Shown one piece after another: positions 1-33,556 of a DNA stretch of 64,000 bases. The stretch comes from Hyalangium minutum (GTDB lineage Bacteria > Myxococcota > Myxococcia > Myxococcales > Myxococcaceae). A program made the translations under genes and the position numbers. How positions within the stretch are numbered: the first letter of the stretch is position 1; every line of letters begins with the position of its first letter. The stretch covers positions 620,001-684,000 of the forward strand of contig NZ_JMCB01000001.1 of NCBI RefSeq assembly GCF_000737315.1, read 5' to 3'. The notes under the pieces are model-generated. The model ran no database searches, was not told the DNA's origin, and saw nothing but the letters and a program-made list of their open reading frames with translations.

Positions 1-3
1 CTT

Positions 4-49
4 GCACCGCCCGGCGCGGCTTCGATTCCCGCCACTTCCATCCTGAGAA
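4..49 (+). repeat. tmRNA (ssrA)-like 3' end fragment, att-like copy 1
   Basis: gcaccgcccggcgcggcttcgattcccgccacttccatcc: T-arm (GCGG-TTCGATT-CCCGC) plus acceptor 3' strand; near-identical to 17799-17843. Confidence 0.7.
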
Positions 50-9017: not shown

Positions 9018-9319
9018 GGCCGCGCTTCATATCGCTCATCGCTGGCGAGATCACCCCTTCAGTACACCTGCATGGGGCTTTGTAAGGTGCGCCTCGCTGG
9101 CGCAGTCCCCGGCAGACCACCTCCACTGCCCGGGGACAAGTCCTACTGGATAGAGAACCCACCATGCATCGACTGGTCGGCCCCCACCCACCGGTGTCCT
9201 CCGGGGTCACCTCGATGATCAGAGCGCGCCCTTGCCCAGGATGTCCTCATAGAGGAGGAGCGGGCCGAACTGGGGAGTCCTCGGTATTTGTTCGCCGTGC
9301 CCCGTCGCCGCCCTGACTT

Positions 9320-10114
9320 CAGCCCATCCAGCAGAGCGGCGAAGTGATCGAGTTCCTGCGGCCCGACGCGGCCCTGCTGAAGTTCGGCGTGCGAACCCAA
9401 CCGTTCAAGGGCGAGTTGCACATGGGCATGCAGACGGGGACTTCGGTCTTCAAGTGGGTCGGCGAGGGGGAGACAGTCCCGAAGAGCGCGCCGAAGTACG
9501 GGAAGATCGTGCTCAAGGCGCACAAGGGCATGGTGCTGACCGACATCAGCAACGACCTCCTGCGCACGCCTGGAGTCGGCGACGCGGGAGTCGGCGAGGA
9601 CATCCGCGCCACCGTGGCTGATGGTCTCGACGACGCAGGCTTTAATGGTGACGGTACGGGCGCCGCGCCGAAGGGGCTCTTCGTGCAGCTCGACGCCGCT
9701 TAGGTCTTCGCGAGCACGGGCACGACCGCCGACGCCTACCTCGCCGACATCGACAAGGCGATCGAGCTGCCGCTGACCGCGCACGTGCGGATGGGCACTG
9801 CGGCATGGGTGATCCACCCGACCCGCGCGACGGCGCTGATGCAGCTCAAGGACACCGGCATCTTCATCTTCCGTCAGGAGATGCTCGACAAGGGGACGAT
9901 CCGCGGCTTCCCCTTCGTGATGACGACACGCGTCCCGGTGACGCGGATCACGTTCTCGGCCGACTGGCGTCAGTACCTCTACGGGATCGACGAGGATCTG
10001 ATCCTCTCCGAGCACAACACCCGCGCCGAGTACGACGAGACGACCATCCGCGCGATCGTGAAGGGCGACTTCAAGCTGCGCCAGCCGAAGGCGTTCAGCT
10101 CGATCACCTACTGA
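9320..10114 (+). pseudogene. HK97-family phage major capsid protein remnant (5' truncated, one in-frame TAG)
   Basis: ORFs 9344-9703 and 9785-10114 are in one frame separated only by TAG at 9701-9703; motifs WVGEGE, ISNDLL, NGDGTG..PKGL, W..HP, final D..LRQP.AF. Confidence 0.75.
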
Positions 10115-10274
10115 CCCGCCAGCCTGTCACCGGGGCAACTCGCACAGTGCATGCGGAAGACCTGTTCCCGAGCAGTGCCGCTCGTCGGGGGCGCGTCCAT
10201 CTGGATCGGAAAGGTGTACCGCCGATGATAGACGCGCCCCCGATGTCTGAGCGTCCTGTCACTCCAGGCGGGCG

Positions 10275-10317
10275 AGCCTTGACCCACGGCCCCCCGCTTG
10301 ATTGAAAGGACGCAGCC
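10275..10317 (+). promoter_or_regulatory. Conserved toxin-gene leader (TTGACC element and RBS) shared with locus at 33557-33599
   Basis: agccttgacccacggccccccgcttgattgaaaggacgcagcc vs reverse-strand agccttgacccgcagcacctcgcttgattgaaaggacgaggcc. Confidence 0.6.
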
Positions 10318-11220
10318 ATGCCTCGCCGAACTTGTAGCGCCCCCCTGCTCCTGCTCCTGCTCTCAGCCTGCACAACGATGGATCCGAGCCCGGGAGAGTT
10401 TGAGGCCCCGAGCCCGAGACTCGCCAATCTTCAGCGTGCGGCGCTGTACCCCTGGACGGATGGTGGGCAGTGCGTCGTGCGCGAAGCCTCCAACGAATGG
10501 CCTATCCTGGCGGAGAGATGCTTTTACGCTCTAGAGCGCGACAGGATGAGGTTTCGGGATGTGACAAAGAAATGCGCCGTCGCCCAAGCAGATGCAGCGG
10601 CTCCCGCAGTCGTCGCCCTCTGTATCTTTGCCGCGCCCGAGATCGTCGTCGGTGCAGTGATTGTTGTTGGCGCGGTAGTGGCGGCAGCCGCCATCCAAGA
10701 GGGGATTGATGCTTATCAGCGGAACGCATCCCGCGAGCGCGCGAAGCCCAAGACTCAGACACGGCCCGCGAAGGAACCCGTGGCGCAGAAAGAGCCGAAG
10801 CCGAAGGGCTTGGGGCCGGATGTGCTCCCGCCCATACCATCCGATCCCACCGAGCGCCCGGAAAGCAGGCCCGTTCCGGTTCCGCACGCGGGCGGCAATG
10901 ACCCGCACAACGACTGCGCCGACCTCATTCCGCAGAACAACTTCCCCGGATGGGATGTGCTTGTTAATGGCAAACAATTCGACGCGCTAGTGCTTGTTAC
11001 GCGGACGCTATGGGATGTTAAGACCGACAATTTTGACATCCACTCGCCTCGGTCTCAGGACTTTCTTGCCAGGGTGAAGCTGCCAGAGCTTCAGCGTGAG
11101 AAGAGACTCGCTGAAGAGTGTGGGTATAACTTTGCCATTGGCGTACGGAGCCAAGCTCACAAAGACGTGTTGTTTAAGCTAGACCCGACCCTCACTGTTG
11201 TCGTCATGAATTGGTGCTGA
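10318..11220 (+). CDS. Polymorphic lipoprotein toxin (SitA-like; DUF6310-like) with PD-(D/E)xK nuclease-like C-terminus
   Basis: LSAC lipobox, hydrophobic AVIVVGAVV segment, C-terminal FDAL...LWDVK; N-terminus nearly identical to 32639-33556; followed 1 nt later by immunity-like gene. Confidence 0.75.
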   Translation: MPRRTCSAPLLLLLLSACTTMDPSPGEFEAPSPRLANLQRAALYPWTDGGQCVVREASNEWPILAERCFYALERDRMRFRDVTKKCAVAQADAAAPAVVALCIFAAPEIVVGAVIVVGAVVAAAAIQEGIDAYQRNASRERAKPKTQTRPAKEPVAQKEPKPKGLGPDVLPPIPSDPTERPESRPVPVPHAGGNDPHNDCADLIPQNNFPGWDVLVNGKQFDALVLVTRTLWDVKTDNFDIHSPRSQDFLARVKLPELQREKRLAEECGYNFAIGVRSQAHKDVLFKLDPTLTVVVMNWC

Positions 11221-11221
11221 A

Positions 11222-11980
11222 ATGGCAGCCTTGCAAGCATCCCTCACCCTGAACGTCTACGCGCCTGCGCTCGCAGACGACGACAAGCGCCCTCTCGCCA
11301 TTGTCCATGGAATGGAGCGAGCCCTGCCCGACGTTCGCCTTGGGTGGACGATGTCGGAAAAGGAAAAGCTCATCGCATTGCCCCACCGTGATGAGTGGGT
11401 TGCAACCAACAGGATAGACGGCGGATTTCCCTTTCTTTGCAATGACGATGACAATCGCGTTGTGACACTAACCGGCTGGGAGAACCCAAACGGCCTTGCC
11501 GCAGAAGGCCCACCGCACCTGCAAGTCTATGGGAGGCTCCCACTGGACGCAGGCGGCATCGCAGCGGCTGTGGATGTGTTAGAGGCTATAGGAGACAGTT
11601 CTCGCGCGTTCTGGGGGCATACATCGCCCGAGGGAGTAATGCGAGACATTGCAGACCAGCTTGGCCCGAAAATGTATGGACGGACAGAACCGCCACGGGG
11701 GCTGCCTGCGCTCAAGCTCCCACGGAACATCCCCGCGCAAGAGATCCCGCATTATCTCGGGTGGCTGAACTATTGGTCTGCCGCTGCCGCGATGGCCATC
11801 GGGTTCCCGGACCCGGCCCGCGACGCCGAGCTGCTCATGCGAGCGCATCGCACGCCGTCGGGCGGGTGGGTCGTGCAGCTCACCGATGCTCCGCTCGACC
11901 TCGACGACCCCGCCCACCTGGACGCGCTCAAACGGGCCTACGAGCGCTTCCCGGTGATCGGCGGGCGCGACTCTCCGTGA
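11222..11980 (+). CDS. Putative cognate immunity protein (DUF5953-like)
   Basis: Directly downstream of toxin; paralog of 31884-32642 with conserved C-terminus GWLNYWS...GGWVV.LTD.PLD. Confidence 0.7.
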   Translation: MAALQASLTLNVYAPALADDDKRPLAIVHGMERALPDVRLGWTMSEKEKLIALPHRDEWVATNRIDGGFPFLCNDDDNRVVTLTGWENPNGLAAEGPPHLQVYGRLPLDAGGIAAAVDVLEAIGDSSRAFWGHTSPEGVMRDIADQLGPKMYGRTEPPRGLPALKLPRNIPAQEIPHYLGWLNYWSAAAAMAIGFPDPARDAELLMRAHRTPSGGWVVQLTDAPLDLDDPAHLDALKRAYERFPVIGGRDSP

Positions 11981-12050
11981 CCGCTCGGCTCGGGGCGCGC
12001 TGCGCGGGCGCTTGCGATGGTAGGGTGCGAATCCAGGAGGTCACCCACCT

Positions 12051-12917
12051 TTGATCGTACCCGTCAGATTGGCCCTTCTGCTCGCTCTCTTGCTGGGGGC
12101 TGCCACGCGAGCCGAAGCCGCGCCGAGCCGCACGAAGCGAGATCGGCCCGTCGCCGTCACCGTCAACCCTGCCGAGCCACTACCCGAGATCCACGTCGCG
12201 CCTGACGTGCCCACGGTCCTGCTCTTTCCCGCCGACATCCAGAAGAAGACCATCACGGTAGAGCAGTCGCGAATCCGGGTGGTGGACACGGGGGCGCGCT
12301 CAATCATCGTGCAGGCTGCTCCCGACTACCGGGCCGACGAGCAGCAAGAACTCGAGGTTTTCTTCGCGGACGGCGGGGCGCCAGCACGGGCCGCGTTCGT
12401 GCTCGTCATGGACCCCGCCGAAGTGGACACGCGGATCGACGTGAAGCGGCCCGAGCCGCCGAACGCGGCTTGTCCGGCCGAAACGCAGCGCGCTGAGCCT
12501 CGACCGGAGGACTTCGTCTTGCTGGGCTACGTGGACGCATCCGGCGTGCCCACAACTACGTTCGACGGCGCCCCAGATGAGGCGCAAGGGCTCAAGTCTC
12601 AACCGGGCGTGTCCTATCGCGGTCATGGTTGGGTGCTGATGGATGTGACGATTCGCAACCTGCCCGGTCTGCCACCGTGGACGCCTCGCGATGCGACGTT
12701 GACGGGCAAGGGGGGAGTCACACTGCGGGCGCGGCTTGTGGCGGCACCGAAGGGAGAGATCGCTCCGGGGGAACGTGCGCGGGTGCTCGTGGTGGTAGAC
12801 ACGCTGCCTCCGAGCGCAGGACTTGTCTTTACGTTGGAGGTGCGCGGGGTAGATGGCCGAAGCGTTGTGATTCCACGAGTGACACTTCCGACCGCCGCTC
12901 TGGAGGGCAAGCGATGA
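12051..12917 (+). CDS. DUF2381-like myxobacterial exported protein
   Basis: TTG start with AGGAGG RBS, signal peptide (AEA-AP), PEIHVAPDVPTVLLF motif; stop overlaps kinase start (ATGA). Confidence 0.7.
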   Translation: MIVPVRLALLLALLLGAATRAEAAPSRTKRDRPVAVTVNPAEPLPEIHVAPDVPTVLLFPADIQKKTITVEQSRIRVVDTGARSIIVQAAPDYRADEQQELEVFFADGGAPARAAFVLVMDPAEVDTRIDVKRPEPPNAACPAETQRAEPRPEDFVLLGYVDASGVPTTTFDGAPDEAQGLKSQPGVSYRGHGWVLMDVTIRNLPGLPPWTPRDATLTGKGGVTLRARLVAAPKGEIAPGERARVLVVVDTLPPSAGLVFTLEVRGVDGRSVVIPRVTLPTAALEGKR

Positions 12918-14692
12918 GGACTCTTCTCAGGCTGCCGTCCGGCCTTTTCATTGATGGCTGGCACGTGTTGAAGGAACTCGGCAACGGTGGCTTTGCAGTC
13001 GTCTATCTCGCGGAAAAGAACGGGAAGCGTTGCGCGCTCAAGGTGGCGCGGCACCGCCAGGCCAGCGGGGACGAAAAGCAGACACACGCTCGCGCGAAGC
13101 GCGAATTGACGGTTCTTTCGATGCTGGATCATCCGAACATCGTCGCGCTTTGCGGCCATGGGTACGCGGAGGCAGGCAATTTCTACCTCGCTCTTGAGTA
13201 TGTGGACGGCTGGACGCTCGACGAGTGGAAAGAGCGCAAGCACCCCACCTTTCACGAAATCCTGCGCGTCTTTGTGAAGATCGCCGCCGCTCTAGCCTAC
13301 ATGCACAGCCGGGGCATCCTTCACCGGGATTTGAAGCTCGTGAACGTCCTGATCCGGAAGAGCGACGGCGAGCCGATCATCATCGACTTTGGCTGTGCGA
13401 CATACGAGCAAGCGGCGGATCTGACCGAGAGCGGCCTTCCGCCCGGAACCGATCGCTTCCGTGCGCCTGAGCAGTTCAAATACCTGCGCGAGCACAGGGA
13501 AGAGCACAGGGCGAAGTATGCCTTCCAGGTGGCCGACGAGATCTTCGCCGTCGGCGCGATGATCTACGAGCTGCTAACGGACCCGCGACCGACCGAAGAG
13601 CGCCCGCGCGAGACTCTCAACAGCCCGTTCGATCCGCCCCCGCCGCCCCGGGCTCGAAACCCCCGCGTGCCTGAAGCGCTCAGCGACCTCGTCGAAAGCA
13701 TGCTGTCCCGCGATCCCGCGAGCCGCCCTGTTGATACCGATGCGCTTCACCGCGAGTTGGCCGAGTTGGAGGCGCATCCGGGAGCCGACTACCAAGCGCT
13801 CGCGCATCTCCCCTCAGAGCAGCGTCGGCCCGAGCAGCCTAACGTCAGCGAGCCGGTCGAGCAGCACGCGGGCCGATGGGGCAAGCTACGTGCGTTGGGC
13901 GGCAGAGTGGGTGCCGTCGTCCGTCGCTCGGGGAATGTGCTCGCGGCGAGCGCGATCGCTGCCGTCGTGCTCGGCGTTGCCGTAGCCCTTTGGTTCCGTC
14001 CCCAAACGCCTGAGTCAGTCGCCGAGCCCATCGTCGCCACGAGCCCGACGCCCCCGACAGCCGCCCCTGATATGTCACCCCTCGCCCCCGCGCCTATGGT
14101 GGGCACAGTGCCAACACCCGCCCCCGTATCGGAGGAAGGTTCAACCGTGAAGACACCCCCACCCGAAGACCCGAAAGAAGCACGCCGCCAGAAGACCTCT
14201 TCCGGCTCGGACATGCGCAAAGTCGTGCCGATCGTTTGCTCCCTCGCGGCCGGATGCACCGGCGTTCCAGTCAAGCCTGATGCGTTCACCTGCCCGGAGG
14301 GTTCGCAGCGTGCGATGGAAGAGTTGCACTGGACGGGCCGAGAGCAGTTTAGCCTTGTGCTGGACGACCGACATGACGAGGACGCGGACATTTGGTTGCG
14401 CCCGGGCGACACGGTTGTAGGGATCGTTCCTAAAGGTGTGACGCCATCGCAGGCCAAACTCGCTCCCCCAGGAACGCAGTTCCTCGGAGGGAAGGTCTAC
14501 GTGTGGCCCGAGAAGACGGCATCCGGCAGACCGGGTCGGGTCGTTGTGAAGTACGAGCGCGTGAAACTGCCACGACAGGACGAGGTTCCCGTGTGCTTCG
14601 TCGTCGACGTGGGCGCCCTTGAGCTAAAGGACGGCAACGCGAAGACCGCGAACGGTACGGCAGGATTCATCGAGCGTTACTGGCGACCCTGA
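12914..14692 (+). CDS. Hanks-type Ser/Thr protein kinase, transmembrane, with C-terminal extracytoplasmic domain
   Basis: GNGGFAVVY, ALKVA, LHRDLKLVN, IIDFG; TM segment AIAAVVLGVAVALWF. Confidence 0.9.
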   Translation: MRTLLRLPSGLFIDGWHVLKELGNGGFAVVYLAEKNGKRCALKVARHRQASGDEKQTHARAKRELTVLSMLDHPNIVALCGHGYAEAGNFYLALEYVDGWTLDEWKERKHPTFHEILRVFVKIAAALAYMHSRGILHRDLKLVNVLIRKSDGEPIIIDFGCATYEQAADLTESGLPPGTDRFRAPEQFKYLREHREEHRAKYAFQVADEIFAVGAMIYELLTDPRPTEERPRETLNSPFDPPPPPRARNPRVPEALSDLVESMLSRDPASRPVDTDALHRELAELEAHPGADYQALAHLPSEQRRPEQPNVSEPVEQHAGRWGKLRALGGRVGAVVRRSGNVLAASAIAAVVLGVAVALWFRPQTPESVAEPIVATSPTPPTAAPDMSPLAPAPMVGTVPTPAPVSEEGSTVKTPPPEDPKEARRQKTSSGSDMRKVVPIVCSLAAGCTGVPVKPDAFTCPEGSQRAMEELHWTGREQFSLVLDDRHDEDADIWLRPGDTVVGIVPKGVTPSQAKLAPPGTQFLGGKVYVWPEKTASGRPGRVVVKYERVKLPRQDEVPVCFVVDVGALELKDGNAKTANGTAGFIERYWRP

Positions 14693-14839
14693 GACCCCGG
14701 CTAGTGGAGCGTCTTACAAGTTCGGAACATAGTCGCGGGTCATTACGGGGTTGATCCGTCAAGGCGTGCCCTGGGCATCGGGCCTCGGTGGCGGCGTCGG
14801 CCCTCAACGACTATGTCCAAAGACTTCGCGGACACTCCA

Positions 14840-16326
14840 CTAGTACTACTGTGTCATAAACGTTAGGCTTTGCCGGTGCCGGGGACGCCCCCGCACCACG
14901 GGCAGCAGGGGAGTCGTAGCAGCAGCATGCGTGCCTGACGGATCCTCTGGGTGGTGATGGACGCCGGGTTGTGGCGCTCGGGGCGCAGGGGCAGCACCCC
15001 GCACCTGGAAATCCGCGGGTATTGGAGCGGGGCGCAAGAAGGCAACAGGTGCCGGGGGGGAAGCCGAGCACGCTCGGCGGCGAGGAACGCGTAGGCGGCG
15101 ATGCAGAGCACTCCGTGATGGTGAAAGCCCCGCCACCCCCGGCCCTCGTAATGATCCAGGCCCAGCTCGTCCTTCAGTTCCTGGTAGTCGCGCTCGATGC
15201 GCCACCGAATCTTCACCAGGTAGATGAGTTCCTCCATGGCAGTGGCCTCCGGGACCGTGGATAGCCAGTACTTGGTGGGTTCCTTCTCCCCCTTGGGCCA
15301 CTCCACCAGGAGCCACTCGACAGCGCGCGGCTCTGAGCGGCCATAGTCGCGGTGGGCCGCACGTACACGCAGGCGGGCGAAGCGCGAGTGCATAGTCCCC
15401 TTGGTCCCCTCTCGCCAGTGCACGTTCTGCCACTGCTTGGCGGGCAGTCTCAGGGCCAAGTCCTTGACGGACACGGGCTCATGTCCGGGATGGCGCCGCA
15501 GCCTCTTGGGCGGGCGTCCCATGCCGCTGTAGGGCTTGGGCGATAATGGTTGCTGGGATGGGGTCCAGACTGAAGTCGAGGAGGCGATGCCGACAGCGTA
15601 GGAGAGGCCGCGTTCGGTGAGCGCCTCGCGAAAGGCTGTGACATCTCCGTAGCCCGCATCGGCCACCACGGGAGCCAGGGGCAGTTGCTCCGTCAGCAGT
15701 GCATCCACCTGCCCGAGGGCGATCTCCCACTTGGAGTGGATGTGCACCTGCCTCGGGATGCCTGCTGCCCTACGGCGAGCAGCATTCTCAGCCCAGGACT
15801 CCGGCAGGTAGAGGCGGTACGCGCTGGGCACTCTCAGGCTGTTGCACAGCGACAGCGTCACCACCACCTGGCAGTTATCCTGCTTGCCCAGAGGGCCACA
15901 GTACTGCCGCGCCACCCCGACCGAGTGGGTCCCCTTATTGGGCATGCCCGTATCGTCCACTACCCACGCTTCCACTGGGCCGTGCCTCTCCAACTGCTCG
16001 AGGGCATAGTCCCGGGCCACAGCCAGCATCGCTCTCTCGTCCCATGAGGACACGGCGACGAAGTGGTGCAGCGACTGGTGCCGCGCTCGGACGTGCGTCG
16101 GATCCAACTTCGCCGCCATCGGCTCCACGCTCTTGCGCTCGCCGGAGAGCAGCAGCCCCGTCAGGTAGCCGCGCAGTGGCGCCAGCCGATCCACGTGCCC
16201 GATAACAGCTCCCAGACGTTGGAGGTACCCCTCGAACCTCTCTTCAGGCGTGCTCGCTCGTACCGACATGGCTCGCAGTCCCTCCGGAGTCGGCAAAGCC
16301 TAACGTTTATGACACAGTAGTACTAG
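14840..16326. mobile_element. IS701-family insertion sequence with perfect terminal inverted repeats and CTAG target
   Basis: 14840-14875 ctagtactactgtgtcataaacgttaggctttgccg is the exact reverse complement of 16291-16326; CTAG at both ends. Confidence 0.92.
14863..16269 (-). CDS. IS701-family DDE transposase
   Basis: ERKSVEPMA, QSLHHFV, VDDTG.P.KG.HSVGVARQYCG.LGK..NCQ, ADAGYG, RW.IE..YQELK.ELGLDHYEGR.W.GFHHH. Confidence 0.92.
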   Translation of the reverse strand: MSVRASTPEERFEGYLQRLGAVIGHVDRLAPLRGYLTGLLLSGERKSVEPMAAKLDPTHVRARHQSLHHFVAVSSWDERAMLAVARDYALEQLERHGPVEAWVVDDTGMPNKGTHSVGVARQYCGPLGKQDNCQVVVTLSLCNSLRVPSAYRLYLPESWAENAARRRAAGIPRQVHIHSKWEIALGQVDALLTEQLPLAPVVADAGYGDVTAFREALTERGLSYAVGIASSTSVWTPSQQPLSPKPYSGMGRPPKRLRRHPGHEPVSVKDLALRLPAKQWQNVHWREGTKGTMHSRFARLRVRAAHRDYGRSEPRAVEWLLVEWPKGEKEPTKYWLSTVPEATAMEELIYLVKIRWRIERDYQELKDELGLDHYEGRGWRGFHHHGVLCIAAYAFLAAERARLPPRHLLPSCAPLQYPRISRCGVLPLRPERHNPASITTQRIRQARMLLLRLPCCPWCGGVPGTGKA

Positions 16327-16336
16327 GTGACGTAGC

Positions 16337-16385
16337 AGGTAGGTGGTCGAAATCGGCCGCTTTGGGGCCGGACGATCACCTACCT
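16337..16385. promoter_or_regulatory. Imperfect palindrome upstream of pseudokinase gene (possible operator or RNA hairpin)
   Basis: aggtaggtggtcg ... cgatcacctacct arms (one mismatch) enclosing cggcc/ggccg. Confidence 0.4.
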
Positions 16386-16473
16386 AGCGGGGCGTTCCAC
16401 TCACCCCCATCCACTGGGTAACATGAGCCCGTCTCGCGTTGGCATGGTGCCCATGCGAGTAGGAGGATCGAGC

Positions 16474-17604
16474 ATGGCAGCGATCGAGTTCACGCTTCCG
16501 CAGGGGGCGATTCTGTTCTCCGCCGAAAATGGGGTGTCTTACGAGTTCCGCAAAGACTTGGGCGAGGCACATCACGGGCTGAGCCTCTTTCTGGCGCGGC
16601 GACGCGTCAATGGGTACGCGCAAGGGAAGGTGCTGCTCAAGGCGGTCGGCAATCCGATCGGCGCTGAGCAGGCGATGCGGGTCTTCAAGGCGCGGGCGAA
16701 GCTCGAAGAGCAGGTGCGGCTTTCAGCGTACCTGCGGCACCCGGGCATTGTTCGCACCCACGGCCTGCACAAGACCGCATCGGCTTGGTACGTGGTCACC
16801 GACCATCCGGCGGGGCAGGATCTCGATGACCTGATGGGACTCGCGACCGAACTCGACCGCTGGTTCTCGCCCTTCTTCACGCTCTACGTCGGCGCGCGGG
16901 TGGCGGACGTGTTGCAGTACGCGCACGCGACCAAAGGCGCACAGGGACACTCGCTGGGGATTGTCCACCGGGCAATCGACCTGAGTCACATCTTCATGGA
17001 TTGGGAGGGGCAGGTTCAGGTTTCCGACTTCGGGCTCGCGCTCGCCACCCTGCCGGGCCGCGTCGCCTCCACCGTGCGCCGACCGCAAGGGGATACCTAC
17101 TTCGCTTCGCCCGAGATGCTTCTCGGCGGCAAGGTGGATGCACGCTCGGATCTCTTCTCGCTCGGACTCGTCATGCTCGAAATGTCCACGGGGCGGAACC
17201 TGCTCGATACCGATATGGGGGTCTCCGACGCGGCAAAGTCGGCACTCTCGAAGAGGCAGTTCGCCCGCGTGAAGCGCGCGATCAAGCGCGCTCGGCTGGC
17301 CGGGTGTGAACCCGCGATCGAGCAGACGATCTGGCGTGCGGCGACCTACACGCAGGAAGACCTCGAAGCGGTCACGGAGGGCCTGCCCGATACGCTGCGC
17401 GTCCCCCTTCGCAAGCTGCTTCAGCGCTCACCCACCGCGCGCTACCAGACCGCAGGGGAGTTGGAGACGGACCTGCACCGATGGCTCGGGGGCCAATTCG
17501 GTAAGGAAAAGGCTGCGGCCGAGCTGAAAGAGCTGAAGAGGGAGACAGGCGCGGTCATGGTCGACTGGGGCTTGAAGGGTTCGGACAGCATCACGACGGC
17601 CTGA
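16474..17604 (+). CDS. Ser/Thr kinase-like protein, probable pseudokinase
   Basis: AGGAGG RBS; kinase fold motifs VLLK, VHRAIDLSH (HRD changed to HRA), SDFG, ASPE, DARSDLFSLG; no glycine-rich loop. Confidence 0.8.
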   Translation: MAAIEFTLPQGAILFSAENGVSYEFRKDLGEAHHGLSLFLARRRVNGYAQGKVLLKAVGNPIGAEQAMRVFKARAKLEEQVRLSAYLRHPGIVRTHGLHKTASAWYVVTDHPAGQDLDDLMGLATELDRWFSPFFTLYVGARVADVLQYAHATKGAQGHSLGIVHRAIDLSHIFMDWEGQVQVSDFGLALATLPGRVASTVRRPQGDTYFASPEMLLGGKVDARSDLFSLGLVMLEMSTGRNLLDTDMGVSDAAKSALSKRQFARVKRAIKRARLAGCEPAIEQTIWRAATYTQEDLEAVTEGLPDTLRVPLRKLLQRSPTARYQTAGELETDLHRWLGGQFGKEKAAAELKELKRETGAVMVDWGLKGSDSITTA

Positions 17605-17798
17605 GCGCCCCCGGTGCCGGTCCCCACTGCCCTGGGGGCCGGTCGGGGCGTAGGAGCCCCCGCCCATGTTGCGTCAGTGTTGCGTGAGAGTGCGGAACGG
17701 GTTGGAACGGGGCGGGACGACATGGGACGCGGCGGGATAACGACTCCAGATCATTCCGGGCGGTTCCGAGATAAGGGCGCGATTCTGCGAGAGGTTTC

Positions 17799-17843
17799 GC
17801 ACCGCCCGGCGCGGGTTCGATTCCCGCCGCATCCATCCGAGAA
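17799..17843 (+). repeat. tmRNA (ssrA)-like 3' end fragment, att-like copy 2
   Basis: gcaccgcccggcgcgggttcgattcccgccgcatccatcc; direct repeat of 4-49. Confidence 0.75.
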
Positions 17844-17889: not shown

Positions 17890-18957
17890 CTACGGGGCGT
17901 CCCAGGCCACCGTGCCGCTGCAGCTATCGTCGCGGTAGCAGCCGGCGCGGATCTGATACCTGCCTGAGATTGTGGGGGTATAGCTCAGGTTCGAGCCGTA
18001 GCCGTTGCAGGCGTCGTCATTGGCCGCCACCTCATTGCCCGAGGAATCGTAGAGCCGCAGGTAGGAGTCACCGACGATGTTGCTTCCGGCCAACCCGCAG
18101 GTCCCCAAGGTGATCGTCCTGCCGGCGGCGATGTAGACATCCTGGTTCACGGTGTGGATCTGCGCGTTGTCCGTGGTGCTCGTGGCGAAGGCGTAGGTGC
18201 CGCTCGTCGGAGGGAAATCGCCACCGCGCTCCCACGCGACCGTGCCGCTGCAGAAGAGGTTGGCGTAGCAGCCGGCAGCGATCCAGTACGTGTCCGTCGC
18301 CAGGCTCATGTAGCTCAGCTTCGAGCCCGAGCAATCGTTGGCCTCGTTGTTGAACGCCACCTCGATACCCCCGGAGGTGTAGAGGCGCAGGAAGGAGTCA
18401 CCGGAGACGCTGCTCCCCGACACCCCGCAGGTGCCCACGGTGATTGTCTCGCCCGCGGGGACGGTGACCTGCTCGTTCACCGTATACCTCCAGGCGTTCT
18501 GGGTGTTGCCCGTGCTGAAGGGGAACGTCCCTCTTGCAGAAGGGGGCGGCGCGCCGACGACGAGCTCCCACACCACCGTGCCGGTGCAGCTCTCATTGGA
18601 GAAGCAGCCGGCGCGGAGCTCGTAGTCGCCGGCCGTGGGCGCGGTGAAGACGATCTTGGAGCCGCGCCCCCCGCAGGCATCGTCACTCTCGACCACCTGG
18701 AGGGTGTCCGGCCCGAACAGGCGCAGGTACGTGTCACCCGAGAACGCTGTGCCCGCCAGGCCACACGTGCCCACGGTGAGCGTCTGTCCCGCCGTCATCG
18801 CGAAGGTCCTCTGGGTCGTGTTGTGCTGGGCGCTGCCGGTCTGGGTCGCGGAGTACGCGAAGGAGTCGGTCGACAGCAGAGAGATGGCACTGCTCGGAGA
18901 GGCCTGGACCGCCAGCGGGAACACCGCGAGCAGGCACGCCATTCGAATACGGGTCAT
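17890..18957 (-). CDS. Secreted protein with three Cys-containing PPC-like beta-sandwich repeats
   Basis: Signal peptide (VQA-SP); three repeats T.GTCG..G....GD..LRL.....ND.C...S.....AGC.....C.GTV.W. Confidence 0.7.
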   Translation of the reverse strand: MTRIRMACLLAVFPLAVQASPSSAISLLSTDSFAYSATQTGSAQHNTTQRTFAMTAGQTLTVGTCGLAGTAFSGDTYLRLFGPDTLQVVESDDACGGRGSKIVFTAPTAGDYELRAGCFSNESCTGTVVWELVVGAPPPSARGTFPFSTGNTQNAWRYTVNEQVTVPAGETITVGTCGVSGSSVSGDSFLRLYTSGGIEVAFNNEANDCSGSKLSYMSLATDTYWIAAGCYANLFCSGTVAWERGGDFPPTSGTYAFATSTTDNAQIHTVNQDVYIAAGRTITLGTCGLAGSNIVGDSYLRLYDSSGNEVAANDDACNGYGSNLSYTPTISGRYQIRAGCYRDDSCSGTVAWDAP

Positions 18958-19095
18958 CACGGCTCCTGGGATGGGGAATGCAGGAAAGCCTGCACTCACC
19001 GTCATACCCGACAGCACTGACAATCCGTTGACTCCCAGCGTCCTCCAGCACCGCGGAAGCGCCACGCTCGGTGCACCTCTGCAGCGTACGGCGGG

Positions 19096-22000
19096 CTAGC
19101 GCGTCACCGTCACGGTGACGGCCGTGCTGTAGACCGAGTTGCCGGCTCCATCATACGCCCGAGACCTCAGCGTGGTGTTGCCGATGGACACCTTCGTCGT
19201 GTCCCAGGACCAGGTGTACGGCGCCGTGGTGACGGAGCCCAGCAACAGCGAGCCCTGGTAGAACTCCACCTTGGTGATGGTCCCCCGGTCATCACTCGCG
19301 ATGGCGTCAATCTGCACCACCCCGGTGACCGTGGAGCCGCTGGCCGGCGAGGTGATGGACGTCGTGGGCGGCGTGAGATCGTTGTCGAAGATCACATTCA
19401 CGGGAGCCGAGGTCCCGATGTTGTTCAGGGTGTCGTACGCCTTGGCCGTGAGGACCTTGCTGCCATTGACCAGGAGCCGGGTGTTGTAGCTGAAGGAGTA
19501 CGGCGCCGTGGTGGCAGTGCCCACCTGCGTGGTGCCGGCGAAGTAGACCACCTTGGAGATCCCCGCTGCATCGCTGGCCGTGGCCGTGAAGACGACGGTA
19601 CCGGTCAGCGTCTCGCCCTCGGCCGGCGCGGTGAGTGTCACCGTGGGCGGCGTGAAGTCATTCTCGAAGGTCGCATTCACCGGCGCCGAGGTCCCCAGGT
19701 TGTTCAGCGTGTCATACGCCTTGGCCGTGAGGACCTTGGCCCCATTGGGCAGGAGCCGGGTGTTGTAGCTGAAGGAGTACGGCGCCGTGGCGTCGGAGCC
19801 CACCGCCGTGGTGCCGACGAAGAAGTCCACCCGGGCGATCCCCGCAGGATCGCTGGCCGTCGCCGTGAGGACGGCGGTGCCGCTCAGCGTCTCGCCCTCG
19901 GCCGGCGCGGTGAGTGTCACCGTGGGCGGCGTGAAGTCGTTCTCGAAGGTCACGTTCACCGGTGCGGAGGTGCCCATGTTGTTGACGGCGTCATACGCCG
20001 TGGCCGTGAGCACCTTGGCCCCGTTGGGCAGAAGCCGGGTGTTGTAGCTGAAGGAGTATGGCGCCGTGGTGTCGGAGCCCACCTGCGTGGTGCCAATGAA
20101 GAAGAGCACCCGGGTCACAGCCAGGTTATCGCTGGCCGTGGCCGTGAAGACGACGGTGCCTTTCAGGGGAGCGCCCTCGGCCGGCGCGGTGAGCGTCACC
20201 GTGGGCGGCGTGAAGTCGTTGTCGGCGTTCACCCGGACCTCGGCGGTGCCCACGTTGCCCCCGGCGTCATACGCCTTCGCGGTGAGCGTGCGATCACCGT
20301 TGGCGCCTGCACGCGTGTTCCAGTTGTAGGCGTACGGCGAGGAGGTGTCGGTGCCCAGCAACGTGCTGCCCTCGTAGAAATCGACGCGGGTGACTCCCAG
20401 GTTGTCTGTGGCCGTCGCGGTGACCGTGAGGGTGCCCGTCACGGTGGCCCCCTCCACGGGAGCGGAGATCGACACGGTGGGCGCGATCAGATCGTTGTCC
20501 ACCGTCACGTTCACCCCAGGCGAGGTGGAGGACTGCCCCAGGGCGTCATAGGCCTTCACGGTGAGCGAATGGGCGCCATTGCCCGCGGTTCTCGTGGCCC
20601 AGGAGAAGCTGTAGGGCGAGGCGGTGTCGGTCCCCAGCAGCGTGGCCCCGTCGTAGAACTCGACTCGGGTGACGGCCACGTTGTCGGTGGCTGTCGCGGA
20701 GAGCGTCACGGTCCCCTTCAGCGTCGCGCCCTCCACAGGCGCGGTGAGCGTCGCCGTGGGCGGCGTGAGGTCATTGTTGAAGGTCACACTCACCGCAGCG
20801 GAGGTGCCCACGTTGTTCAGGGTGTCATAGGCCTTCGCCGTGAGGGTCTTGGCCCCATTGGGCAGGTTCCGGGTGTTGTAGCCAAAGGAGTACGGCGCCG
20901 TGGTGGCAGTGCCCACCTGGAAGGTGTCGACGAAGAAATCCACCTTGGAGATCCCCGAGGTGTCGCTGGCCGTGGCGGTGAAGACGAGGTTCCCAGACAC
21001 GGTTGCGCCCTGGCGCGGCGCGGTGAGCGTCACCGTGGGCGGCGTGAGGTCATTGTCGAAGGTCACGTTCACCGTGGCGGAGGTGCCCAGGTTGAACAGG
21101 GTGTCATAGGCCTTCGCCGTGAGGGTCTTGGCCCCATTGGGCAGGAGCCGGGTGTCGTAGCTGAAGGAGTACGGCGCCGTGGTGGCAGAGCCCACCTGAG
21201 TGGAGCCGACGAAGAAATCCATCCGGGAGATCCCCGAGGGGTCGCTGGCCGTGGCCGTGAGGACGACGGTGCCGGTCAGCGTCGCACCCTGTCCCGGAGC
21301 GGTGAGCATCACCGTGGGCGGCGTGTAGTCATTGTCGAGGGTCACATTCACCGCTGCGGAAGTGCCCACGTTGTTCAGGGTGTCATACGCCTTGGCCGTG
21401 AGGCTCCAGGCCCCATTGAGCCGGCCCCGGGTGTTGTAGCTGAAGGAGTACGGGGCTGTGGAGTCGGTCCCCACCAGGATGGGGCCGAGGAAGAACTCCA
21501 CCTGGGAGATCCCCGAGGTGTCACTGGCCGTGGCCGTCAAGAGGACGGTGCCGCTCAGGGTCGCGCCCTCGGTTGGCGCGGTGAGCGTCACCGTGGGCGG
21601 CGTGAAGTCGTTGTTGGCCGTCACCGTCACCTGGGCAGTGGCCACGTTGCCCCCGGCGTCATACGCCTTCGCGGTGAGCGTGCGGTCACCGTTGGGGCCT
21701 GTGCGCGTGTTCCAGCTGTAGGCGTACGGCGAGGTGGTGCCCGTGGCCAGCAGCGTGCTGCCCTCGTAGAGCTCGACGCGGGCCACGCCCTGGTCGTCCG
21801 TGGCCATCGCGGTGACCGTGAGGGTGCCCGTCACAGCCGCCCCCGCGGCTGGGGCGGAGATCGACACGGTGGGAGCGATTAGATCATTGTCCACCGTCAC
21901 GTTCACCCCGGGCGAAGTGGCGGACTGCCCGCCGGCGTCATAGGCCTTCACGGTGAGCGAATGGGCGCCATTGCCCGCGGTTCTCGCATCCCAGGAGAAG

Positions 22001-24600: not shown

Positions 24601-24704
24601 GTTCCCCCCTGCTGGAATCGGACAGCCAAGCTGCACGAACGGCCCCTGCTTGTCCATGCCAATCCCGTCTGCTCGGCCCAGTCTCCTCGCGGCGTCTTCT
24701 CCTC

Positions 24705-25196: not shown

Positions 25197-25324
25197 GGCA
25201 TTCTCCCTTGTGGGGCGGTCCTTGGACCGCGAGTCACGCTTCGAGGGCTGAGCAGCTCCCCTCACATGGAAGTGAGCCGACGAGGCGGAGAACGATTCAG
25301 AAAATCAACGTGCTCCTGGGCCCT

Positions 25325-31883: not shown

Positions 31884-32642
31884 TCAGCGTGGAGAGTCGC
31901 GTCCGCCGATCTTTGGGAAGCGCTCGTAGGCCCGCTTGAGCGCGTCCAGGTGGGCGGGGTTGTCATAATCGAGCGGCGCATCCGTGAGCTTCACAACCCA
32001 TCCGCCCGACGGCGTGCGCCGCGCCCGCGTGAGCAGTTCGGCGTCGCGAGCAGGATCCGGGAACCCGATGGCCTGCGCGGCAGCAGCAGACCAATAGTTC
32101 AACCACCCGAGGAAATAGGGAATCTCAGGCCCGGGGAGTTTTTCTGGAAGATTGAGCATGGGAAGCCCACGGGGTGAGCGCTCCGGCCCATGAGCGGAGC
32201 GGCGAAACTGGTCCCCGACTTCCGAGCCGTAACCATACCGGGACGCATGCCCCCAGAACGCGCGCGCCCCCTCCGCCACGGCCTCAAGCATAGCCTCCGC
32301 TGCCGAGATAACGGCCTCGTCTAGCGGCAACTCCGCATGAACTTGGAGCTGCGGCTGACCGCCCGGGCTGAAGAGTACCGAGCTTTCCCTGCCGTTCACC
32401 GTCACGGGGTAACTCTCGTCCCCGTTGCACAGAAGAGGGAATCTCCCGTCCTGCGTCCTTTCCACGAGCCACGCGTCGCGATGCGGCAATGCGATGGGGC
32501 GCCCTCCTTCGGAGATCCTCCACGCCAAGCGCAAACCGGGAAGTGCTTTTTCCATCCCATGGATGACATCGAGCGTACGGCCGTCTTTGCTCACGAGCGC
32601 AGGCGCGTAGACGATGAGGGTGAGGGCTCTGGGCTTGGTCAT
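31884..32642 (-). CDS. Putative immunity protein (DUF5953-like), paralog 2
   Basis: ATGA overlap with upstream toxin; paralog of 11222-11980. Confidence 0.7.
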   Translation of the reverse strand: MTKPRALTLIVYAPALVSKDGRTLDVIHGMEKALPGLRLAWRISEGGRPIALPHRDAWLVERTQDGRFPLLCNGDESYPVTVNGRESSVLFSPGGQPQLQVHAELPLDEAVISAAEAMLEAVAEGARAFWGHASRYGYGSEVGDQFRRSAHGPERSPRGLPMLNLPEKLPGPEIPYFLGWLNYWSAAAAQAIGFPDPARDAELLTRARRTPSGGWVVKLTDAPLDYDNPAHLDALKRAYERFPKIGGRDSPR

Positions 32643-33556
32643 CGTATGCACCCCGTAACGACGATATTGAGTTCGGGAAGCGCTTCGCGCAGCGCGTCTT
32701 TGTGCGCTTGCGTGCTCACCCCAACGACGAAGTCGTATCCACAGGCCCGCGCAGCGCCGAGTTCCTTCTTCAATTGCTCCACCGCCTTCTCAAGCTCCCG
32801 CCTCCGGATAAAGTCAGGATAGGTGTCAAATCGGTGGGTCTTGATCTCCCACAGCACGCGCACACCGACTTGCAGCGCATCGAAGCGCTCACCGCCCACG
32901 AATACGTCCATGCCGGGGTAACGGTTGGGCGGAAACTTATCGGCGCACTCATTATGCGGGACATCTCCGCCCGCGTGCCGCACCGGGATGGGCTCGCACG
33001 ACGGACGGCGCGGCGTGGTTTCTGGCGGTGGGGGGAACATGTCTCCGGAGGGTGATCCCTTTGGCTTTGGCGTTCGGTTCGCTAACGGTTCCTGAGCGGG
33101 CTGCGTTTGAGCCTGGGGCTTCGCGCGCTCGCGGGATGCGTTCCGTTGATAAGCATCAATCCCCTCTTGGATGGCGGCGGCCACCACCACCGCACCAACA
33201 ACAATCACTGCACCGACGACGATCTCGGGTGCCGCAAAGACACAGAGGGCCACGACTGCGGGAGCGGCTGCATCCGCGTAGGCGACAGCGCATCTTTTGG
33301 TGACATCCCGGAACCTGACCCTGTCGCGATCAAGAGCGTGAAAGCACCGCTCCGCAAGGATCGGCCACTCGTTGGAGGCTTCCCTCACCACGCAATGCCC
33401 GTCATCCGTCCACGGGTACTGCGCCGCCCGCTGAAGGTTGGCGAATCTCGGACTCTGGGGACTCGGGTCCTCCAGCTCTCCCGGGCTCGGATCCATCGTG
33501 GCGCAGGCCGAGAGCAGGATCAGGATCAGGGGGACGGTCCAAGTTCGCGAACGCAT
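32639..33556 (-). CDS. Polymorphic lipoprotein toxin (SitA-like; DUF6310-like), paralog 2
   Basis: LSAC lipobox; conserved N-terminus with 10318-11220; C-terminal FDAL...LWEIK. Confidence 0.75.
   Translation of the reverse strand: MRSRTWTVPLILILLSACATMDPSPGELEDPSPQSPRFANLQRAAQYPWTDDGHCVVREASNEWPILAERCFHALDRDRVRFRDVTKRCAVAYADAAAPAVVALCVFAAPEIVVGAVIVVGAVVVAAAIQEGIDAYQRNASRERAKPQAQTQPAQEPLANRTPKPKGSPSGDMFPPPPETTPRRPSCEPIPVRHAGGDVPHNECADKFPPNRYPGMDVFVGGERFDALQVGVRVLWEIKTHRFDTYPDFIRRRELEKAVEQLKKELGAARACGYDFVVGVSTQAHKDALREALPELNIVVTGCIR

Follow-up and report, generated by a model that had tools for sequence, protein, structure and literature searches.

The window, a 64,000-nt stretch of the Hyalangium minutum genome, contains a cassette of eight elements between positions 9,317 and 17,838. 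These are an HK97-type major capsid pseudogene (9317..10114), a gene for a 300-aa DUF6310 lipoprotein that is a putative toxin (10318..11220), a DUF5953 gene (11222..11980), a gene for a secreted DUF2381/TIGR02268 protein (12051..12917), a gene for a 592-aa Hanks-type membrane Ser/Thr kinase (12914..14692), an IS701-family insertion sequence of 1487 bp (14840..16326), a gene for a cytoplasmic pseudokinase of 393 aa (16423..17604), and a non-coding arm that ends in a core resembling the 3′ end of ssrA (17640..17838). Annotation located every element named in a preliminary description of this DNA, which had placed all of them on the plus strand; this is so except for IS701, whose transposase (14863–16296) is encoded on the minus strand. 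The single nucleotide separating the lipoprotein and DUF5953 genes (TGA A ATG) and the ATGA overlap between the DUF2381 and kinase genes were both confirmed in the sequence.

The capsid pseudogene matches Pfam Phage_capsid, TIGR01554 and the PHROG major head protein, and its identity to sequenced phages does not exceed 28%. It is missing ~98 N-terminal codons, carries an in-frame stop (CAG to TAG at 9701–9703) and, aligned from 9322, shows ~90% nucleotide identity to the intact 361-aa capsids of three other loci (L021, L034 and L054). On one IMG/VR contig (L060), the gene order is portal, protease, capsid, toxin, immunity and then the DUF2381–kinase–pseudokinase triad. At the other end of the cassette, a tmRNA-like fragment or mini-helix (17775–17838, plus strand) was detected with Rfam at 30.4 bits (E 4e-10), below the gathering score of 47. 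A pattern search identified four copies of a 26-nt ssrA-like core in the window where none is expected, with the downstream core of the cassette at 17810–17835. In an alignment of the four, the first copy (1..43, plus strand), which bounds a 17.8-kb island on the left, is the terminus of the genuine ssrA gene or else a further att scar. The ssrA-like att scars of the window are arranged in tandem. The same arm and core are found 170–950 nt past the pseudokinase in eight other loci, and homology among loci stops exactly at the 3′ end of the core; the arm and core thus appear, from these comparisons, to be an attR-type boundary of the element. In Myxococcus xanthus (locus L141), the triad ends beside an intact tRNA-Leu and not an ssrA-like core. 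Linkage to a capsid gene and an att-like terminus, both proposed earlier, are conserved across loci.

The locus resembles ssrA-targeting integrative elements and myxobacterial prophage-like regions such as Mx-alpha in that islands are flanked by direct repeats of the ssrA 3′ end and in its head genes, toxin cargo and conserved arm-plus-core boundary, but the window retains just a capsid pseudogene, and its large ORFs, scanned at 1–35 kb, include no integrase. With these two features, the element is decayed and probably immobile, and the preliminary description of a mobile module seems not to apply to it as it now stands.

The lipoprotein has a conserved, Cys-rich N-terminal region of ~175 aa with a nearly invariant lipobox (L-S-A-C; Cys18). 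Hydropathy analysis places a conserved hydrophobic segment at residues ~91–132, a feature at odds with a simple outer-membrane lipoprotein. A Pro/Lys-rich linker joins this half to the C-terminal domain (residues 178–300), which matches DUF6310 (Pfam, 6e-55) and models as a PD-(D/E)xK nuclease-like fold (AF2, pLDDT >90); D222 and K235 are invariant, and position 233 is D or E. The best PDB matches found with Foldseek are to TseT–TsiT (PA3907–PA3908; PDB 7dym, 9oz0), a T6SS nuclease effector–immunity pair of Pseudomonas aeruginosa, followed by XisH, nickases and Vsr. The TseT–TsiT matches (probability 1.0 and 0.99) share the PD-(D/E)xK-type core, and each is paired with an immunity protein, although sequence identity is 9–11%, the E-values are only 2e-3 and 9e-3, and TseT is T6SS cargo whereas DUF6310 is found in a lipoprotein delivery context.

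The DUF5953 gene (Pfam, 1e-115) encodes a cytoplasmic protein and follows the DUF6310 toxin in 43 of 49 metagenomic loci. Across 13 cassettes, a set that includes the window and three cassettes cut at a contig end, pairwise identity of the toxin C-domain and of the DUF5953 protein are correlated (rho 0.74), whereas either of the two against the toxin N-region, DUF2381 or the kinase gives rho of only -0.12 to 0.11. Conversely, the toxin N-region co-varies with DUF2381 (rho 0.72) and DUF2381 with the kinase (rho 0.82). DUF5953 is thus presumably the cognate immunity protein, and the lipoprotein, judged by its modeled fold, is a plausible nuclease toxin whose immunity gene varies along with it. 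A second, paralogous DUF6310/DUF5953 pair, identified by tblastn and ORF analysis, is present in the window on the minus strand (31884..33556; toxin 32639–33556, immunity 31884–32651) with no triad downstream. Its N-region is 81%, its C-domain 47% and its immunity protein 61% identical to those of the first pair.

The pair is similar to SitA/SitI (PMC5562445; PMC8546572) in its lipoprotein with a lipobox and a residue other than Lys at +2, its C-terminal nuclease-type domain with an immunity gene immediately downstream, its multiple copies per genome, its location on prophage-like or mobile DNA, and its swappable C-domain/immunity modules. It differs in having an N-region of ~175 aa with a long hydrophobic segment, compared with the ~375-aa SitA escort (PMC8546572), and in its DUF6310 toxin domain. 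The lipoprotein matched neither SitA5_escort, the sole SitA escort model seen in NCBIfam, nor any other NCBIfam model. The nuclease-like fold and the co-variation support the lipoprotein toxin and immunity gene of the preliminary description, but as judged by sequence the protein is not a member of SitA5_escort, the only SitA family for which a model was compared.

The second part of the cassette is the triad. The DUF2381 protein (Pfam/NCBIfam) carries a signal peptide and is modeled as two beta-sandwich domains with a VirB9-like architecture (AF2, pLDDT 85.7); its top eight PDB matches in Foldseek (E 1.5e-8 to 5e-4) appear, from their entry titles, to be VirB9-family subunits. The kinase gene comes after DUF2381 in 46 of 47 loci. 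Its product (Pfam Pkinase) consists of a cytoplasmic kinase domain (16–280) with the motifs GNGGFA, ALKV, HRD137, DFG158 and APE184, one transmembrane segment (341–362), a Pro/Thr-rich linker, and a periplasmic C-domain (~455–592) that is conserved in 40 of 41 loci and for which searches returned no detectable relative. The pseudokinase, which in 34 of 40 loci is encoded within 5 kb on the 3′ side of the kinase gene, matches Pfam Pkinase at 5.5e-18. Its HRD motif reads HRA (residues 182–184), so that the catalytic Asp is missing; the Gly loop has degenerated, the beta3 Lys and DFG remain, and this pattern is kept across 31 orthologues.

Upstream of the triad is a leader (12000..12050, plus strand) with CTGCGCG at 12000–12006, GATGGTAGGGT at 12016–12026, which fits TGnTAnnnT, and GGAGGTCA at 12036–12043, followed by the TTG start. 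An alignment of 27 loci shows that the leader (CTGCGCG..GATGGTAGnnT..GGAGG..TTG) is present whatever lies upstream, in three different contexts. It may be the triad's own promoter, a reading based only on resemblance to a consensus; a sigma-70 scan found nothing in 9–18 kb of the window.

The signaling arm had been considered uncharacterized, which is only partly right. Paralogous clusters with the same order (DUF2381, STPK and a kinase-like gene), for example MXAN_1233-1234, 2177, 3182-3183 and 4841, have been described in M. xanthus, where these STPK/PKc-like/DUF2381 clusters are tied to phase variation and show phase-variation-dependent expression and a sporulation bias (PMC3986340; bioRxiv 10.64898/2026.08.28.747804). 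The different regulation of an STPK (+2-fold) and a PKc-like gene (-41-fold) in M. xanthus (PMC3986340) implies separate promoters. Orthologous pseudokinase genes of M. xanthus are switched off 35–46-fold in tan phase variants. At L141, to which no particular MXAN cluster is assigned, the triad order is kept and the pseudokinase is 57% identical to that of the window. In the published work on the M. xanthus clusters, we found nothing on a toxin linkage or a mobile-element context, and nothing on the pseudokinase as such or on protein folds; more generally, DUF6310 is named in none of the papers searched, and no published mention was found of its nuclease fold, of the toxin linkage, of the att-proximal position or of the VirB9-like fold of DUF2381.

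The cassette layout recurs in Myxococcaceae/Archangiaceae, and the arrangement exceeds chance, because the same gene order is found in dozens of independent loci. Elsewhere, at least nine loci seen in full (eight from the genome scan plus the IMG/VR contig) keep all five genes together, with order and orientation unchanged. A lipoprotein toxin/immunity pair or its remnant lies directly upstream of at least 24 of 43 triads and 19 of 43 have no toxin pair, while only 3 of 36 DUF6310 pairs have DUF2381 or a triad downstream and 33 do not; the fractions are biased, as the genome scan started from near homologues of the DUF2381 in the window, and many of the loci are paralogues within a few genomes and hence not independent. 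Thus, the linkage of toxin and triad is real but not obligatory. The slot upstream of the triad is occupied by two unrelated toxin families, DUF6310 and SitA5-AHH/Imm11 (the latter in L141, L038, L040, L041 and L043), both on the same strand and 70–190 nt upstream, and in M. xanthus and relatives it holds a bona fide SitA5 toxin. Such regularity exceeds what simple hitch-hiking would predict and could reflect function.

In the model of the preliminary description, the five genes would form one system, in which DUF2381 and the kinase ectodomain sense an envelope cue and the kinase and pseudokinase control the expression or activity of the toxin pair or the maintenance or induction of the element. 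The constant order, orientation and short spacers in all loci with both modules, the sharing of one slot by two toxin families, the co-variation of the toxin N-region with DUF2381 and the kinase, and the proximity of the att-like boundary are consistent with this proposal. However, either module is often found alone, as in the second pair of the window, and triads persist after toxin loss, with orphan immunity remnants adjoining intact triads in L001, L030, L034, L039 and L049. Toxin C-domain and immunity alleles are shuffled and are not tracked by DUF2381 or the kinase, and it is with phase variation and biased sporulation, rather than killing, that the M. xanthus clusters have been linked (PMC3986340; bioRxiv 10.64898/2026.08.28.747804). 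The separability of the modules and the conserved promoter-like leader specific to the triad weaken the proposed control of toxin expression or element maintenance by the kinase arm, and we consider a single system unlikely.

A role in phage defense is improbable. The triad would then be a prophage-borne module for lysogenic conversion or for defense by superinfection exclusion or abortive infection, and the toxin pair a separate addiction or competition module; the membrane kinase would sense an envelope breach or incoming DNA and signal via the pseudokinase. The cargo position between head genes and the att-like end, the resemblance of the kinase domains to the PADLOC defense kinases PD-T4-6, mad6 and Stk2, and the Xre-type regulators that M. 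xanthus clusters adjoin and respond to (PMC3986340) would suit such a role. The PADLOC matches are generic kinase-domain matches, however, and no PADLOC family was matched by DUF2381, the toxin or the immunity protein. None of 50,697 phage records contains DUF2381, and some triads are found in ordinary metabolic neighborhoods (e.g., L005).

Very improbable is a third proposal, that the triad is an envelope-spanning device for export, release, import or neutralization of the adjacent toxin, gated by the kinase domain. Its components would be a VirB9-like periplasmic protein and a membrane protein of VirB10/TonB-like topology (transmembrane segment, Pro-rich linker and C-terminal periplasmic domain). 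DUF2381 does resemble the VirB9 family (VirB9, TrwF, CagX, DotH) as a secreted periplasmic protein with two beta-sandwich domains, its top matches apparently coming from five T4SSs, and the kinase topology and the linkage of two lipoprotein toxin families to the triad also point this way. Yet the likeness is at the fold level only (10–19% identity, TM ≤0.63 per domain), generic Ig-like matches rank close behind, and there is no Pfam VirB9/CagX or other sequence-family match. No VirB7, VirB10, ATPase or other T4SS genes lie nearby, the partner of DUF2381 is a Ser/Thr kinase whose C-domain lacks a detectable relative, and most toxins of both families occur without a triad.

Two insertions interrupt the kinase–pseudokinase spacer. 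A MITE-like insertion of 141 nt (14699..14839, no strand assigned), bounded by 13-nt terminal inverted repeats and absent from L001, L008 and L009, adjoins IS701 (NCBIfam transpos_IS701, 418 bits), which has 43-nt terminal inverted repeats (14840–14882 and 16284–16326) and limits set against the same three uninterrupted loci. The capsid pseudogene, these insertions, the tandem att scars and the missing integrase among large ORFs of 1–35 kb would fit non-functional debris of an old element with no present role in H. minutum, but this is the least probable explanation, as all five cassette ORFs match the full length of their orthologues and have conserved motifs, the insertion begins 6 nt past the kinase stop, and upstream of the pseudokinase the native spacer is kept almost entirely.

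On balance, the cassette probably represents the end, next to the att site, of a decayed prophage-like element that is associated with ssrA, encodes an HK97-type capsid and carries two genetically separable cargo modules, the triad being dispensable for the toxin. One module would be an autonomous envelope-signaling triad with its own promoter-like leader, in which the secreted DUF2381 protein, translationally coupled to the kinase, may bind the periplasmic C-domain of the kinase, and the active kinase may act on or with the catalytically dead pseudokinase. The other would be a polymorphic toxin–immunity pair. The conserved N-terminal half of the outer-membrane-type lipoprotein may serve in delivery or entry, and the DUF6310 domain would act as a PD-(D/E)xK nuclease that is neutralized by cytoplasmic DUF5953; recombination would swap the nuclease domain and the immunity gene jointly and independently of the remaining cassette. 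The two modules would travel together as cargo at the same end of one element family, with the multi-copy triad providing a fixed right-hand boundary for toxin-module swapping without being needed for toxin function. Given its position and architecture, the DUF6310/DUF5953 pair would most likely act like SitA/SitI, in kin discrimination and in addiction to the element.

The region from 9.3 to 17.9 kb was annotated by GC3-guided ORF calling and profile searches, which bore out the genes and coordinates listed for the cassette in a preliminary description. On the plus strand lie an HK97-type capsid fragment (9317–10114), a 300-aa lipoprotein with a C-terminal DUF6310 domain (10318–11220; the putative toxin), a 252-aa DUF5953 protein whose gene begins 1 nt past the toxin stop codon (11222–11980; the putative immunity protein), a DUF2381/TIGR02268 protein of 288 aa that bears a signal peptide (12051–12917), a 592-aa Ser/Thr kinase whose gene shares an ATGA overlap with that of DUF2381 (12914–14692), and a 393-aa kinase-like protein (16423–17604). 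A tmRNA-like fragment is found at 17775–17838 (30.4 bits, E 4e-10, under the Rfam gathering score). The sole error in the earlier inventory was to place all genes on the plus strand: the IS701 transposase (14863–16296) is encoded on the minus strand. The IS701 element spans 14840–16326 with terminal inverted repeats of 43 nt, and its left end abuts a 141-nt MITE-like element (14699–14839) with 13-nt terminal inverted repeats (CTAGTGGAGCGTC / GACACTCCACTAG). CTAG flanks both elements (window 14699–14839 region), which suggests a common CTAG target. Loci that lack the interruption align with the window to 14698 and again from 16325–16329; thus, both insertions lie 6 nt past the kinase stop codon, and the native spacer 5' of the kinase-like gene is almost wholly retained.

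The toxin carries a type II signal peptide whose lipobox (L-S-A-C18) is nearly invariant across 44 homologues. Its sequence has Thr at position +2 and Ser at +7, and because such residues direct lipoproteins to the outer membrane under a published sorting rule (PMC5562445), outer-membrane sorting of the toxin is predicted. In the AlphaFold2 model, residues 178–300 have a pLDDT >90 and the N-terminal 177 residues <50. The DSSP order of the C-domain is a helix (196–202), four strands (213–234), a second helix (244–267) and a strand (271–276); D222 and K235 are invariant, with D or E at 233, so the domain displays the alpha-beta-beta-beta-alpha-beta core and the D...(D/E)xK signature of PD-(D/E)xK enzymes. 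Its best PDB matches are to the P. aeruginosa T6SS nuclease effector TseT with TsiT (9oz0_B, probability 1.0, E 2e-3; 7dym_A, probability 0.99, E 9e-3; identity 9–11%), and the next Foldseek matches are to XisH, to nicking and restriction endonucleases (Nt.BspD6I, BstEII) and to Vsr. DUF6310 is the sole Pfam match, no Pfam Tox-REase family being matched, and a profile of the toxin against PDB sequences returned nothing significant. From this fold-level argument, made at 9–11% identity, the DUF6310 domain is predicted to be a PD-(D/E)xK nuclease.

The toxin and immunity genes appear to travel together. In a toxin-centred metagenome scan, DUF5953 lies 3' of DUF6310 in 43 of 49 cases. Pairwise identities among 13 complete cassettes (78 pairs, Spearman rho) co-vary between the toxin C-domain and the immunity protein (0.74), between the toxin N-region and DUF2381 (0.72), and between DUF2381 and the kinase (0.82), and fall to between −0.12 and 0.11 when the C-domain or the immunity protein is compared with the toxin N-region, DUF2381 or the kinase. 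Thus, the nuclease domain and the immunity gene were swapped jointly within an otherwise co-inherited cassette, which, on these identities, is the behaviour of a polymorphic toxin system. A second DUF6310/DUF5953 pair is encoded on the minus strand (toxin 32639–33556, immunity 31884–32651) with no DUF2381–kinase–pseudokinase triad beside it; it is 81% identical to the first in the N-region, 47% in the C-domain and 61% in the immunity protein, and is followed by a 228-aa secreted protein. In two database proteins (P0202 and P0229), Pfam matches DUF2381 and DUF6310, or DUF5953 and DUF6310, in a single chain, which reflects either a fusion of genes or an artefact of gene calling. All of the 120 homologues listed are named solely 'DUF6310 domain-containing' or 'hypothetical', and no mention of DUF6310 or DUF5953 was found in the papers searched. 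DUF6310/DUF5953 is predicted from sequence to behave as an unnamed polymorphic nuclease toxin–immunity family.

The preliminary description had set the toxin beside the SitA lipoproteins of myxobacteria, and this likeness holds in part. The lipobox, the C-terminal nuclease-type domain and the immunity gene directly 3' of the toxin (1-nt gap) are those of a SitA-type locus. The family-defining N-terminal escort domain was not found: at E≤0.01 the toxin has no NCBIfam match, SitA5_escort (NF050093) included, and its N-region of ~175 aa is about half the length of SitA escort domains (~375 aa; PMC8546572). On paper, the window toxin is therefore SitA-like, with SitA membership not established by an escort comparison made with the SitA5 model. 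True SitA5 toxins occur at related loci, where the toxins of L141 (M. xanthus CP017174), L040 and L041 score 298–306 bits on SitA5_escort. In L141, the slot upstream of the triad holds a 440-aa AHH-nuclease lipoprotein and an Imm11 protein, the lipoprotein N-terminus scoring 298 bits where the cut-off is 160, and a SitA5/Imm11 pair likewise precedes the triad in L038, L040, L041 and L043. SitA5/SitI5 (Imm11) pairs are described as toxins for which outer-membrane exchange (OME) is the delivery route (PMC8546572; bioRxiv 10.64898/2026.08.28.747804).

To examine conservation of the gene order, a DUF2381 alignment was used to seed a genome scan; it yielded 54 loci, which belong to Myxococcus, Corallococcus, Pyxidicoccus, Hyalangium and MAGs. 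Window proteins were mapped on them by tblastn and counted over loci with enough flanking DNA. In this sample, which includes many paralogues of few genomes and was seeded by close relatives, so that the fractions describe the sample and are no unbiased census, the kinase directly follows DUF2381 in 46/47 loci, its periplasmic C-domain is conserved in 40/41, and the pseudokinase lies within 5 kb downstream in 34/40; DUF5953 is upstream in 20/43 and DUF6310 in 16/43. All five genes are in view in eight loci, so the order from toxin to pseudokinase does recur elsewhere. For instance, L060, an IMG/VR contig, carries portal, protease and capsid genes and, after ~400 nt, toxin, immunity, DUF2381, kinase and pseudokinase genes; by gene content this is the layout of the window, but with an intact capsid gene.

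In the window, the capsid gene has become a pseudogene: from 9322 on, it can be aligned with the intact 361-aa capsids of the comparison loci L021, L034 and L054 at ~90% nucleotide identity, lacks the first ~98 codons and carries a CAG-to-TAG change at 9701–9703. Capsid homologues with 88–96% aa identity lie 3–4 kb upstream in these three loci. The capsid remnant (9322–10164) is ~90% identical in nucleotides and 88–96% in amino acids to intact capsids of other genera (L021, L034, L054, L060), the adjoining cassette proteins being merely 45–75% identical to those of the same loci; from these identities, the head module seems to be recently shared and the cargo old or diversified. The prohead protease and capsid form a single fused ORF of 634 aa in L034 (3716–5620) and L054 (3412–5316) and separate ORFs in L021, where they overlap, and L060. 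In a phage database search, the capsid was ≤28% identical to those of known phages and DUF2381 was absent.

A 26-nt core of the ssrA 3' end occurs four times in the window, always on the plus strand (15–40, 17810–17835, 25324–25349 and 29114–29139; 0 expected), and these direct repeats delimit islands of 17.8, 7.5 and 3.8 kb, as around islands that integrate at ssrA. The intact structural or replication module and integrase of such islands are not found, a search for Phage_integrase among the large ORFs of 1–35 kb having been negative, and the large ORFs between core copies are ordinary cargo; from 45 kb on, the window is housekeeping DNA. The array looks like a tandem series of decayed islands adjoining ssrA, with the cassette as the right end of the first island. 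Neither ARAGORN nor Rfam at gathering score called a tRNA or tmRNA gene in the window, the att core being detected only as a tmRNA fragment below the Rfam threshold; the window probably starts inside or just past ssrA. The next island holds, on the minus strand, a PPC-domain repeat protein (17890–19065) and a 1946-aa protein with Kelch and Ig-like repeats (19096–24936). An asgB mutant of M. xanthus shows strong up-regulation of Big-domain and Kelch genes (PMC3986340).

That the cassette ends at an att-like site, as first described, is borne out by other loci. An ssrA-like core lies 170–950 nt past the pseudokinase stop codon in L001/L006, L009, L013, L017, L018, L034, L036 and L049, and in a seven-locus alignment homology spans the pseudokinase stop codon, an arm of ~210 nt and the core, whose final base is also where it ends. 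This is the picture that an attR-type junction would give; an element-borne decoy core that later took up other insertions would leave the same pattern. Within the arm, ~65 nt upstream of the ssrA core, lies a near-copy of that core in inverted orientation (17725–17746 vs 17815–17835: GGGACGCGGCGGGATAACGA vs TTCGATTCCCGCCGCATCC). The arm also has repeated GGAAC/GGGAC motifs, and its conservation exceeds that of the coding sequence next to it. The RNAalifold covariation term for arm and core is +1.22, which gives no covariation support, and so no claim of a structured RNA is made. An ARAGORN tmRNA call in L018 (13861–14196) overlaps the 3' end of the pseudokinase and has an atypical tag (ARRARASDFPA), and Rfam at gathering score found no tmRNA in eight loci examined, L018 among them; the call is therefore probably spurious or degenerate. 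In L141, the triad ends instead at an intact tRNA-Leu(taa) gene (9427–9512), 212 nt past the pseudokinase stop codon; integrase and excisionase-like genes of another element lie 3' of the tRNA, and endolysin-like genes lie upstream of the sitAI5–triad block.

The first triad kinase (12914–14692) is of the Hanks type, with GNGGFA, ALKV, HRDLKLVN, DFG and APE motifs, followed by a transmembrane segment (341–362), a Pro/Thr-rich linker and a conserved C-domain of ~135 aa. The protein at 16423–17604 retains the beta3 Lys and DFG, but its HRD has become HRA, its catalytic-loop Asn is replaced by His and its Gly loop is degenerate, changes shared by all 31 aligned orthologues; it is thus a predicted pseudokinase, as first proposed. 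No relatives of the kinase C-domain were detected by PDB-sequence profile, permissive Pfam or hhalign against DUF2381 (probability 1.3%); a permissive Pfam search of this domain and of the toxin N-region gave nothing beyond a weak Fn3-like hint. Invariant cysteines occur in DUF2381 (Cys141-Pro142) and in the kinase C-domain (Cys459-Pro460 and Cys560), both partners carrying a C-P motif, and an intermolecular disulfide between them is conceivable. Upstream of DUF2381, ~60 nt are conserved in 27 loci irrespective of upstream context, with CTGCGCG, GATGGTAG(C/G)(C/G)T (which fits TGnTAnnnT), GGAGG and a conserved TTG start codon in this order. The conserved leader suggests that the triad has its own, putative, promoter; a sigma-70 and terminator scan of 9–18 kb gave no informative output. 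In L016, an ssrA-like core (9933–9958) lies ~10 nt upstream of the GATGGTAG leader, so that the triad begins directly after an att-like core. In M. xanthus tan variants, an STPK gene rises 2-fold and the adjacent PKc-like gene falls 41-fold (PMC3986340). The DUF2381–STPK–PKc-like clusters of M. xanthus have the gene order of the window and L141, and by this order the window triad is the same kind of cluster as those whose switching accompanies yellow/tan phase variation in M. xanthus.

The toxin pair and the triad are, somewhat more probably than not, two autonomous modules that one family of capsid-encoding elements keeps together as cargo at its att-proximal end. Where both occur, the toxin pair is always on the same strand, 70–190 nt upstream of DUF2381. 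Orphan immunity fragments lie beside intact triads in L001, L030, L034, L039 and L049, so several loci with only a triad formerly carried a toxin; with DUF6310 pairs, SitA5 pairs and remnants counted together, at least 24/43 triads have a lipoprotein toxin–immunity pair or its remnant upstream. The slot is thus filled by two unrelated toxin families. Conversely, 19/43 triads have neither family upstream, some lying amid metabolic genes (L005), and among DUF6310 pairs with enough downstream DNA, DUF2381 follows in 3/36 and the kinase in 1/30. The triad's conserved leader and the opposed changes of the STPK and PKc-like genes in tan variants likewise speak against an obligatory coupling. The idea that all triad-only loci hide another toxin family was rejected, SitA5 pairs being present in just 4/23 and the rest having heterogeneous neighbours. 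As two modules, the toxin pair would have its role in competition or addiction, and the triad would be an envelope-signalling unit related to the phase-variation-regulated M. xanthus clusters; its conserved, multi-copy sequence may also act as a fixed arm at which toxin modules are swapped.

The model proposed at the outset, in which the DUF2381–kinase–pseudokinase arm controls the toxin and immunity genes or the element, is unlikely: the fixed strand and spacing are to be set beside the rarity of DUF2381 and the kinase next to DUF6310 pairs and the triads with neither toxin upstream. Equally doubtful is that the triad forms a toxin-associated envelope device that senses toxin traffic, OME or envelope breach, with DUF6310 and SitA5 modules plugging in upstream. 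In such a device, a VirB9-like DUF2381 would dock on the periplasmic domain of a VirB10/TonB-built kinase, signals passed from the complex via the pseudokinase would change the state of the cell (for instance phase variation, immunity or element induction), and DUF6310/DUF5953 would be a further, so far unnamed, OME-type toxin–immunity family. The AlphaFold2 model of DUF2381 (pLDDT 85.7) has two beta-sandwich domains, and its eight best PDB matches appear, from entry titles, to be VirB9-family subunits from five type IV secretion systems, among them Dot/Icm, Xanthomonas, R388 and Cag (E 1.5e-8 to 5e-4, per-domain TM ≤0.63). Against viral structures, Foldseek of DUF2381 returned generic Ig-like matches only. 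A profile search against PDB sequences gave nothing significant for DUF2381 or the kinase C-domain, Pfam gives DUF2381 alone, and neither the VirB9 sequence family nor VirB7, VirB10 or ATPase genes are found in the window or the loci; the VirB9 likeness is therefore a lead and no classification. A role of the triad in prophage defence or exclusion is very unlikely, since PADLOC leaves the toxin, immunity protein and DUF2381 unmatched and gives only generic kinase-domain matches for the kinases. There is little to recommend a VirB9/VirB10-like toxin-handling device, for which the DUF2381 fold and the missing secretion genes are the relevant observations. Least probable is that the cassette is non-functional debris in the H. 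minutum genome.

Polymorphic lipoprotein toxins on myxobacterial mobile elements and STPK/PKc-like/DUF2381 clusters are already known. In the published literature, no mention was found of DUF6310/DUF5953 as a nuclease toxin–immunity family, of two toxin families recurring in one slot beside the triad, of a toxin–triad block with head genes on one side and an ssrA-like boundary on the other, or of a VirB9-like fold for DUF2381. Kin discrimination in myxobacteria depends on large repertoires of lipoprotein toxins, and the regulation and mobilisation of their loci are poorly known. Here, toxin modules of two unrelated families recur beside the triad at the end of a capsid-encoding element family. 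If this linkage is functional, toxin-based self-recognition would be tied to both phase variation and Ser/Thr signalling; otherwise, the triad remains the marker of a recombination hot-spot at which toxins are exchanged. M. xanthus has an equivalent sitAI5–triad locus, in which both outcomes are directly testable.
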